NCBI GenBank assembly: GCA_028826165.1
Contig: JAPDFW010000147.1
Span: 620,001-684,000, forward strand
Length of the DNA stretch: 64,000 nucleotides
Source of the DNA: Anaeramoeba ignava BMAN
Lineage: Eukaryota; Protista; Anaeramoebae
Direction of reading: 5' to 3'
Below the pieces are notes generated by a model. It saw only the letters and a program-made list of their open reading frames with translations, was not told the DNA's origin and made no database searches. Position numbers and translations under genes: made by a program. This document shows positions 1-2,969 of this stretch, piece by piece (the stretch's first letter is position 1; every line of letters starts with the position of its first letter).

Positions 1-2780
1 AAATAGCTTGTAAATAATTAAATTAAATAAATAAATTAATTAATTAATATTTATTATTATTATTTAATAAATAGAGAGTAAATAATTAAATTCAATAAAT
101 AAATAATTAATTAATTAATATTTATTGTTATTATTTAATAAATAGAATGTAAAATAATTAAATTCAATAAATAAATTAATTAATATTTATTATTATTATT
201 TAATAAATAGCTTGTAAATAATTAAATTCAATAAATAAATAATAAATTAATTAATTAATATTTATTATTATTATTTAATAAATAGTTTGTAAATAATTAA
301 ATTCAATAAACCAATTAATTAATTAATATTTATTATTATTATTTAATAAATAGAGAGTAAATAATTAAATCTAAAAATATCAATAAAATTCAAAAAAAAA
401 CAAATAAAATTATTATTTATTTAATAAATAGAGAGTAAATAATTAAATTCAATAAATCAATAATTAAGAATTTTATTATAAATATTCAAAATAAATATCT
501 TTTTTTTCAATAAACAGAATGTAAATAAAACAATTATTTTCAAAATTATAAACAAATTTATTCATTTTTAAAATTGATTATTTAATAAATAGGAAGTAAA
601 TTATTGATAATTTATAATTGAAAAATGGAGAATGATTCAATTTTTGAATAATGAAAATATCAATAAATGAAAATATTTATTAATTTTTTTTTGAAAATTT
701 AAAATTAATTCAAAAATAAACAGCCTGTAAATCATTAAATTCAAAACCATTTAAACATCAAAATAAATTATTTATTATTATTATTATTATTTAATAAATA
801 GCGAGTAAATAATTAAATCCAATAAATAAATAATTAATTAAATTAATATTTATTATTATTATTATTTAATAAATAGAATGTAAATAATCAACTTCAATAA
901 ATTAATAATTAATACTTATTATTATTTAATAAATAGCATGTAAATAATTCAATTCAATAAATAAATTAAATAATACTTATTATTATTATTATTTAATAAA
1001 TAGTCTGTAAATAATTAAATTCAATAAATCAATTAATTAATTAATATTTATTATTATTATTTAATAAATAGAGAGTAAATAATTAAATCTAAAAATATCA
1101 ATAAAATTCAAAAACAAATAAAATTATTATTTATTTAATAAATAGAGAGTAAATAATTAAATTCAATAAATCAATAATTAAGAATTTTATTATAAATATT
1201 CAAAATAAATATCTTTTTTTTCAATAAACAGAATGTAAATAAAACAATTATTTTCAAAATTATAAACAAATTTATTGATTTTTAAAATTGATTATTTAAT
1301 AAATAGGAAGTAAATTATTGATAATTTATAATTGAAAAATGGAGAATGATTCAATTTTTGAATAATGAAAATATCAATAAATGAAAATATTTATTAATTT
1401 TTGAAAATTTAAAATTAATTCAAAAATAAACAGCCTGTAAATCATTAAATTCAAAACCATTTAAACATCAAAATAAATTATTTATTATTATTATTATTAT
1501 TTAATAAATAGCGAGTAAATAATTAAATCCAATAAATAAATAATTAATTAAATTAATATTTATTATTATTATTATTTAATAAATAGCCTGTAAATAATCA
1601 ACTTCAATAAATTAATAATTAATACTTATTATTATTTAATAAATAGTCTGTAAATAATTAAATTCAATAAATAAAATTAAATAATACTTATTATTATTTA
1701 ATAAATAGTTTGTAAATAATTAAATTCAATAAATAATAAATTAATTAATATTTATTATTATTATTTAATAAATAGAGAGTAAATAATTAAATCTAAAAAT
1801 ATCAATAAAATTCAAAAACAAATAAAATTATTATTTATTTAATAAATAGGAAGTAAATAATTAAATTCAATAAATCAATAATTAAGAATTTTATTATAAA
1901 TATTCAAAATAAATATCTTTTTTTTCAATAAACAGAATGTAAATAAAACAATTATTTTCAAAATTATAAACAAATTTATTCATTTTTAAAATTGATTATT
2001 TAATAAATAGGAAGTAAATTATTGATAATTTATAATTGAAAAATGGAGAATGATTCAATTTTTGAATAATGAAAATATCAATAAATGAAAATATTTATTA
2101 ATTTTTTTTTGAAAATTTAAAATTAATTCAAAAATAAATAGCCTGTAAATCATTAAATTCAAAACCATTTAAACATCAAAATAAAATATTTATTATTATT
2201 ATTATTTAATCAATAGAGAGTAAATAATTAAATCCAATAAATAATTAATTAAATTAATATTTATTATTGTTATTATTTAATAAATAGCCTGTAAATAATT
2301 AAATCCAATAAATAAATAATAAATTAATTAATATTTATTATTATTATTTAATAAATAGAGAGTAAATAATTAAATTCAATAAATAAATAATAAATTAATT
2401 AATATTTATTATTATTATTTAATAAATAGTCTGTAAATAATTAAATTCAATAAATAAATAATAAATTAATTAATATTTATTATTATTATTATTTAATAAA
2501 TAGCATGTAAAATAATTAAATCTAATAAATAAATAATTAAATCTAATAAGTAAATAAATAAATAAATAAATAAATAAATAAATAAATAAATAAATAAATA
2601 AATAAATAAATAAATAAATAAATAAATAAATAAATAAATAAATAAATAAATAAATAAATAAATAAATAAATAAATAAATAAATAAATAAATAAATAAATA
2701 AATAAATAAATAAATAAATAAATAAATAAATAAATTAATTAATATTTATTATTATTTAATAAATAGAGAGTAAATAATTC
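1..2780 (+). repeat. Composite tandem repeat: ~60-75 bp units inside a ~710 bp higher-order triplication
   Basis: Recurrent TTATTATTTAATAAATAG-NNN-GTAAATAATTAAATTCAATAAAT. The marker ATCTAAAAATATCAATAAAATTC recurs near 369, 1087 and 1791. Confidence 0.9.
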
Positions 2781-2969
2781 AAAATATTTTGCAATTCTAA
2801 TTCATTCTCATTTTTTCAATAAAAATTATTTATCATTACAATTCTTTTCAATAAAAGAAAAAATTATTTTCCCTAACAAAAAAAATCTAAATCAAATCAT
2901 TTTTTTCCTTATTAACTTATTTTTTTTCCATTTAATTTACTCAAACAATAAAAATAGGATCATAATTGA
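7..2969 (+). CDS. Putative 3' part of a gene built from 34 single-codon microexons; spliced product LRNLFRRNEPRNHSRRNEPRPSFRENEPRPRSHR, possibly ending DHN*
   Basis: 34 occurrences of (T/C)AG-NNN-GTAAA, mostly ~60-90 nt apart. Triplets vary while the flanks are fixed. No stop in phase 0. Candidate terminal exon TAG|GAT CAT AAT TGA at 2958-2969. The 5' end lies outside the window and there is no transcript evidence. Confidence 0.55.
2551..2734 (+). repeat. (TAAA)n microsatellite
   Basis: Near-perfect tetranucleotide run, lying between putative microexons 33 and 34. Confidence 0.95.

Follow-up and report, generated by a model that had tools for sequence, protein, structure and literature searches.

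The DNA analyzed in the current work (here named the window: 64,000 nt of the Anaeramoeba ignava BMAN genome, contig JAPDFW010000147.1, positions 620,001 to 684,000) opens with an AT-rich array of tandem units in which three variable bases lie between fixed flanks. This raises the question of whether the array is a satellite or, as proposed in an initial annotation made from the sequence, a gene written one codon per exon. A pattern search of window positions 1-2800 retrieved exactly 34 units of the form (T/C)AG-NNN-GTAAA (first triplet at 7-9, last at 2767-2769), compared to a mean of 0.08 and a maximum of 3 in base shuffles of the same region. The search reproduced the triplets and the order in which they had been listed, and likewise the observation that all nine distinct codons end in A or T and that frame 0 is free of stops. 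Outside these units, the region contains only seven AG and three GT dinucleotides. The triplets are bordered by a canonical YAG acceptor and GT donor, as in ordinary introns of A. ignava. Of the 33 spacers, 29 measure 57-83 nt, three 124-128 nt and one 260 nt, in agreement with the noted resemblance to ordinary introns, since all but one of the six introns in the Rab gene present in the window are ~68-96 nt long. In this Rab-type GTPase gene (window 5660-7540), intron 2 is swollen to ~850 nt by an AATTAA repeat.

The array does not begin at the window edge. Upon searching upstream for 5’ exons, as the initial annotation had advised, the chain was found to continue for ~9.4-10 kb with ~73 more 3-nt exons (C137:609523-619938), preceded by a second exon and by a first exon encoding a RING finger and a protein kinase (Table 1). 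Altogether, 104 intact triplets of the cloned type (34 of these inside the window) and three isolated 3-nt exons make a chain of ~107. Exons 1 and 2, the phase 0 junction, the triplets and a terminal exon with an in-frame stop can be joined throughout; a second frame that is also open across the triplets is not in use, since phase 0 is dictated by the second exon of the upstream gene. The predicted protein of ~475 aa has its RING finger at residue 8, followed by the kinase domain, and ~107 of its 110 predicted exons are 3 nt long, yet these specify only ~23% of it. The predicted tail commences with 62 residues that include 24 D/E and no K/R (this acidic part being rich in Ser/Asp/Asn/Glu), followed by a short hydrophobic patch and an Arg/Pro-rich end, the latter two being encoded within the window. 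In paralogous kinases, the position of this tail is occupied by ubiquitin-like, SH3 or ankyrin sequence. The upstream kinase exon is 100% identical to a public A. ignava protein, the model of which (P0001, 408 aa) joins the first 3-nt exon and then reads through into the intron; the microexon chain is absent from it, as expected from the suggestion that gene predictors would miss it. No transcript-derived version of the kinase was found among its homologues.

Table 1. Coordinates of the predicted RING/kinase gene with its array, and of comparable chains in rumen-ciliate contigs (numbers without prefix are window positions).
Location	Strand	Feature	Basis
C137:608050-609052	+	Exon 1, 1003 nt, RING finger and protein kinase	
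C137:609197-609288	+	Exon 2, 92 nt, ends in phase 0	
C137:609523, 609678, 609777	+	Three isolated 3-nt exons with unique introns, before the cloned array	
1..6	+	3’ end of the intron linking the first window triplet to the upstream exons	sequence
7..2769	+	34 predicted three-base exons, phase 0, with 33 AT-rich GT-AG introns between them	pattern search
354..1071	+	Block A, one of three copies of a nine-unit block; contains older, non-cloned introns (83, 72, 128 nt; CAG acceptors)	
623..640	+	Possible dead unit (AG AAT GA, no GT donor) in the 128-nt intron; recurs at 1337 and 2041	inference
1072..1775	+	Block B of the triplicated nine-unit block	
1776..2429	+	Block C of the triplicated nine-unit block	
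2510..2744	+	(AAAT)n microsatellite expansion in the last array intron	
2770..2957	+	Last intron, 188 nt; 3’ half non-cloned	
2958..2969	+	Predicted terminal exon, coding part: D H N and TGA, phase 0	
L117:1761-3160; L131:1455-2480; L115:1575-2610; L058:1-400		Contigs of rumen ciliates, each carrying a chain of 14-40 predicted three-base exons	

Several further elements were recorded at this locus. An 816-nt spacer precedes the cloned array (L036:780-1595 on C137); a 9-nt exon candidate is located upstream of it (C137:609365), while two CAG-NNN-GAAATA near-misses (609410 and 609851) and a short open stretch lacking a donor occur around it. One array intron contains a 4,067-bp DDE_Tnp_4 transposon (C137:615221-619287) with a clean 3-bp target duplication (AAT). 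Its transposase is encoded on the minus strand and carries a long Asn/Glu/Gln repeat, a second ORF of 330 aa has no significant Pfam match, and its short, imperfect terminal repeats begin with GGGC. Finally, the same 309-bp AT-rich tandem repeat flanks the kinase gene on both sides (window 3111-5526 and L037:2700-4450).

The sequence of the triplets carries several signs of coding. Among the 104 intact triplets no stop was observed, as opposed to 4.2 expected from position-wise shuffles, although the associated P = 0.005 is optimistic because the units share descent; likewise, no stop occurs among the 219 triplets of four arrays (see below). Across the 42.8-Mb A. ignava assembly, a search with family-specific flanks retrieved 213 units, 210 of which are 3 nt long, none 4-12 nt, and three 2 nt, each of the latter being readable as a shortened homopolymer. 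With a generic flank pattern, TGG was retrieved 17 times and TAA 4 times in this AT-rich genome, and none of the stop triplets among the generic matches has the flanks of the kinase-array family. A strict pattern returned 1,748 candidate 3-nt exons genome-wide, compared to 574 in the reversed control. The G+C content of the triplets is 27% (0% at the third position) versus 3% for the introns, the median length of which is 70 nt; for reference, the A. ignava genome has been reported to be 80.65% A+T, and its GT-AG introns 91.86% A+T (10.1101/2023.03.03.530753). An interpretation of the units as zero-length recursive splice sites was ruled out, the unit length being 3 and not 0.

A neutral, AT-rich minisatellite in which AG-NNN-GT arises by chance would fit with the array being labeled a 71-nt tandem repeat by TRF, with the abundance of satellites in the A. 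ignava genome, and with the recombination of intron variants against codons, as happens in ordinary minisatellites. Variation is nevertheless not spread evenly along the unit: in the upstream part, the pairwise difference per site is 0.55 for the triplets versus 0.007 for the left flank, and an ~80-fold excess in three columns over the adjoining ones is beyond what neutral turnover would produce. In addition, where this motif is present in ordinary minisatellites of other organisms, one triplet is nearly fixed and is sometimes a stop, while the triplets seen here also appear one at a time between unique introns, and in a transcript as well. An assembly artefact was rejected as well, given that stop avoidance is not expected from sequencing error. 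Both explanations are already largely refuted and are considered very improbable; the array is real and very likely coding by origin.

Comparison of the triplicated blocks indicates how the array changes. Between blocks A and B, 5 of 27 exon bases differ versus 3 of 676 intron bases (Fisher p = 3e-6); three of the five changed codon positions represent two-base changes, and all changes land on codons already present in the array. In block C, AGA is replaced by GAA (two bases) between introns which are identical to those of block B across 154 nt, and one and the same intron variant follows four different codons. The kinase array employs a single codon per amino acid save for Arg: Ser is TCT in 19 of 19 cases (31% genome-wide, where TCA accounts for 38% of Ser, TTA for 37% of Leu and GCA for 56% of Ala codons), and Pro is CCT, while two sister arrays use CCA. 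This single-codon use, together with the reshuffling of intron variants, argues that codons were copied between units rather than inherited from an old exon. Neighboring units carry the same codon about as often as expected (13 vs 11.1, p = 0.31), so that duplication of single units cannot by itself explain codon order. As regards the claim that substitutions are concentrated between invariant AG and GT, the excess of change inside the triplets holds, but the invariance is less telling than claimed: in the homogeneous part of the array at least three of ~107 units no longer possess their AG or GT (0.7% of sites), a rate close to the 0.3-1.1% found at adjoining flank bases. Such dead units would be skipped without a frameshift. 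The best reading of these data is that the exons are real and yet evolve like a minisatellite by unit duplication, probably combined with codon swapping between identical flanks.

The same observations bear on a mobile intron (introner) inserted after each codon of a pre-existing coding exon, which could account for identical intron ends at four unlinked loci, in unrelated genes of differing amino-acid make-up. An old exon would, however, carry mixed synonymous codons, whereas the arrays use almost one per amino acid, and growth is accounted for by block duplications. Inspection of the introns by eye revealed neither a terminal inverted repeat nor a target duplication, and only 3 of the first 100 family matches listed are outside arrays, rather than being scattered as insertions. 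This possibility is therefore regarded as extremely unlikely.

With respect to splicing, a 3-nt exon is indeed spliced in A. ignava: in the protein derived from an assembled transcript of a sister gene (P0150, EukProt), Ser93 is encoded by a single 3-nt exon with an intron on either side, and Ser58-Ser59 by one 6-nt exon. In four A. ignava ankyrin genes, most repeats consist of a 96-nt exon and two 3-nt exons, resulting in a 34-aa period, with the paired 3-nt exons supplying the two hairpin residues of D-x-x-G. Public models which skip these microexons have a 32-aa period as opposed to 34-35 in uninterrupted relatives, and the microexon pairs look constitutive. In the ankyrin gene of A. flamelloides two repeats are present as whole 102-nt exons, and the sole junction modeled at 32 aa contains exactly two 3-nt candidates. 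When 30 protein clusters were checked for EukProt members, only two ankyrin proteins were obtained, both with uninterrupted hairpins. A further ankyrin gene (C2:6001-10000, L038, minus strand) contains runs of ~10, 10 and 4 single-codon exon candidates between repeats, each between unique introns; such runs exceed the two residues required for a hairpin.

The genome scan for additional arrays, also advised by the initial annotation, yielded sister arrays with the same intron ends in the tails of BTB genes on C1 and C57 and in a small Ser/Lys/Arg-rich gene on C87. These differ in amino-acid bias (mixed polar, Lys/Asp-rich or hydrophobic), and also contain insertions and microsatellite expansions; in the C87 array, one intron holds an insertion of roughly at least 700 bp (L047:60-690). 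A transcript-derived homologue of the C57 BTB gene was not found. By eye, homologous sequence was discerned just 3’ of the terminal exons (L045:900-960 on C57, L048:1490-1550 on C87 and C1:409060-409150), and the C87 gene is unrelated upstream to the C1 and C57 genes despite this common 3’ sequence, which suggests that array and 3’ end were transferred together from gene to gene. Cloned-intron arrays of a second family, which are in phase 1 and have a different intron, were identified at C1:942k, where the array falls in a loop of the TLDc-like domain of a TLDc gene, and at C1:1,058-1,073k (L029-L035). Among the chains examined, that of the kinase gene (~107) is the longest predicted.

The kinase array may nonetheless be a copy that is real by origin but dead or bypassed, in which case the transposon, the 816-nt spacer or the length of the run would block correct splicing and the kinase, truncated or silent, would be followed by a drifting minisatellite of intron origin. 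The transposon and the dead units leave room for such decay, as do the rate at which units die, the insertions and microsatellite blow-ups of the sister arrays, and the lack of a transcript product among the kinase homologues. Against this, the triplets have remained free of stops and of length changes, the transposon sits within an intron, codon-focused change persists in the youngest blocks, and A. flamelloides retains 3-nt candidates beside a 2.3-kb intron. We consider decay of this kind unlikely.

Alternatively, as the initial annotation had suggested, every 3-nt exon might be included or skipped, randomly or under regulation, to produce a somatic library of tails from one gene. All exons are frame-neutral, dead units are tolerated, schistosome micro-exon genes vary by exon skipping (PMC4015677), and it follows from simple arithmetic that 1% skipping per exon would leave ~2/3 of mRNAs from 104 exons lacking at least one residue. 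The sole mappable transcript (P0150) nevertheless includes its microexon, the ankyrin pairs require both exons for the 34-aa period, the loss of single residues from a low-complexity tail alters little, and the diversity actually observed is that between genomic copies. Such a library thus appears quite unlikely.

The explanation we favor, to which a probability of roughly 0.68 is assigned, is that the array represents the one-codon-per-exon C-terminal tail of a RING and kinase gene. GT-AG introns of ~70 nt would be removed singly, through intron definition by the ordinary spliceosome, so that each triplet would be added to the growing mRNA. As the data show, the intron-plus-codon unit amplifies in minisatellite fashion by single-unit and block duplication, and its codons are replaced far faster than its flanks. 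The most likely cause of this replacement is short gene conversion, or else unequal crossover, between identically flanked units, with selection against stops and for composition proposed to act as a filter. Because all exons are 3 nt long and in phase 0, the reading frame would survive the gain, loss, death or skipping of a unit. The predicted product is a fast-evolving, mostly disordered tail, taken to be a swappable interaction or regulatory module since it stands where paralogues carry ubiquitin-like, SH3 or ankyrin domains. The original proposal, in which each exon would hold a single codon, receives good, though indirect, support from the frame link, stop avoidance, the 3-nt length, the sister transcript, the ankyrin period and the ciliate parallel presented below, and the chain is probably spliced. 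Weighing against a spliced chain are the transposon in one intron, the 816-nt spacer and at least three dead units, splice dinucleotides in the young part being conserved no better than flanks, and transcript support that comes from one isolated 3-nt exon and not from a long run.

A metagenome scan provided both a negative control, in the form of ordinary minisatellites with the same motif but one nearly fixed triplet, and four contigs of 14-15% G+C in which many differing triplets follow one another, separated by introns of 20-30 nt (Table 1). The chains of L117, L131 and L115 stand behind kinase-type exons and are open only in the frame or frames consistent with exon 1. L117 possesses 40 intact triplets after a kinase and B-box exon, stop-free in frame 0 only, along with near-cloned introns and dead units; a 1-nt exon near position 1783 (AG A GT), which would complete the phase-2 codon, may open its chain. 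L131 and its homologue L115 each have ~30 triplets in phase 2. The telomere repeat that has been reported for rumen ciliates (10.1101/2022.01.05.474053) is present at the end of L117, as well as at that of another contig with the L131 kinase. Identity between L131 and L115 amounts to 97% at splice sites, 86% in triplets and 87% in introns; the triplets being conserved no better than the introns weighs against a coding chain. As judged from sequence, the rumen-ciliate kinase genes have the same chain layout as that of A. ignava. A general and hitherto undescribed generator of diversity in AT-rich protists, with codons between identical intron flanks as exchangeable cassettes through which protein segments would be rewritten codon-wise in the genome, with chains of more than 100 consecutive 3-nt exons handled by the ordinary spliceosome and with possible further reshuffling by skipping, operating in Anaeramoeba and separately in rumen ciliates, is put forward tentatively, with the odds somewhat against it.

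If spliced as predicted, ~107 consecutive exons would be of the smallest frame-keeping size, and less than 3% of a 12-kb pre-mRNA stretch (312 of 12,174 nt) would be retained. Such a gene would offer a direct test of the spliceosome on exons too short for exon definition, and of the order of intron removal. Coding sequence would be hidden in what annotators mask as satellite, and the checked public models skip or misread 3-nt exons. The presence of the same layout behind rumen-ciliate kinases suggests that this is no oddity of one species, and a route to new protein segments, assembled codon by codon, would be provided.

Minisatellites with variant repeat units are made of tandem units, undergo block duplications and have variants reshuffled between units. 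The A. ignava array resembles them in its ~70-nt tandem units, block duplications and reshuffling, and differs in that most of its variation falls on one in-frame, stop-avoiding codon enclosed by splice signals. Near-identical introns at several loci are generated by introner elements, too, as observed here, whereas the A. ignava copies are in tandem, three mRNA bases apart, and the codon moves with the intron. Isolated microexons are known from MAP4K5 (a three-base exon; PMC8632122), RPS24 (3/18/22-nt exons; PMC12207440) and the dinoflagellate Amphidinium (PMC12584245). As in animals, plants and dinoflagellates, 3-nt exons can be spliced and are overlooked by aligners and gene predictors, but those known are isolated or few in a row, in contrast to ~107 predicted consecutive ones in A. 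ignava. In a literature search, mostly of freely available papers, neither extended series of single-codon exons nor Anaeramoeba microexons were found to have been described.

The array works most like a schistosome micro-exon gene (MEG), yet falls outside that class. MEGs have short exons in multiples of three which allow frame-safe skipping, and exhibit fast non-synonymous change and transposon insertions (PMC10526429, PMC4015677, PMC4350168). Similarly, the A. ignava kinase gene has mostly tiny predicted exons in multiples of three, fast-changing codons and a transposon insertion in its array. MEGs possess 10-20 exons, a signal peptide and demonstrated skipping (PMC10526429, PMC4015677, PMC4350168), their exons being mostly 15 bp and their introns 0.1-5 kb (PMC10526429). 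Unlike these, the A. ignava gene has ~107 predicted exons, all of 3 nt, separated by near-identical 70-nt introns, and, judged by its domains, its protein begins with a RING finger followed by a kinase, whereas a MEG product is a small secreted protein that begins with a signal peptide. Single 3-nt exons are already known; the feature for which no precedent was retrieved is the predicted long chain of consecutive single-codon exons.
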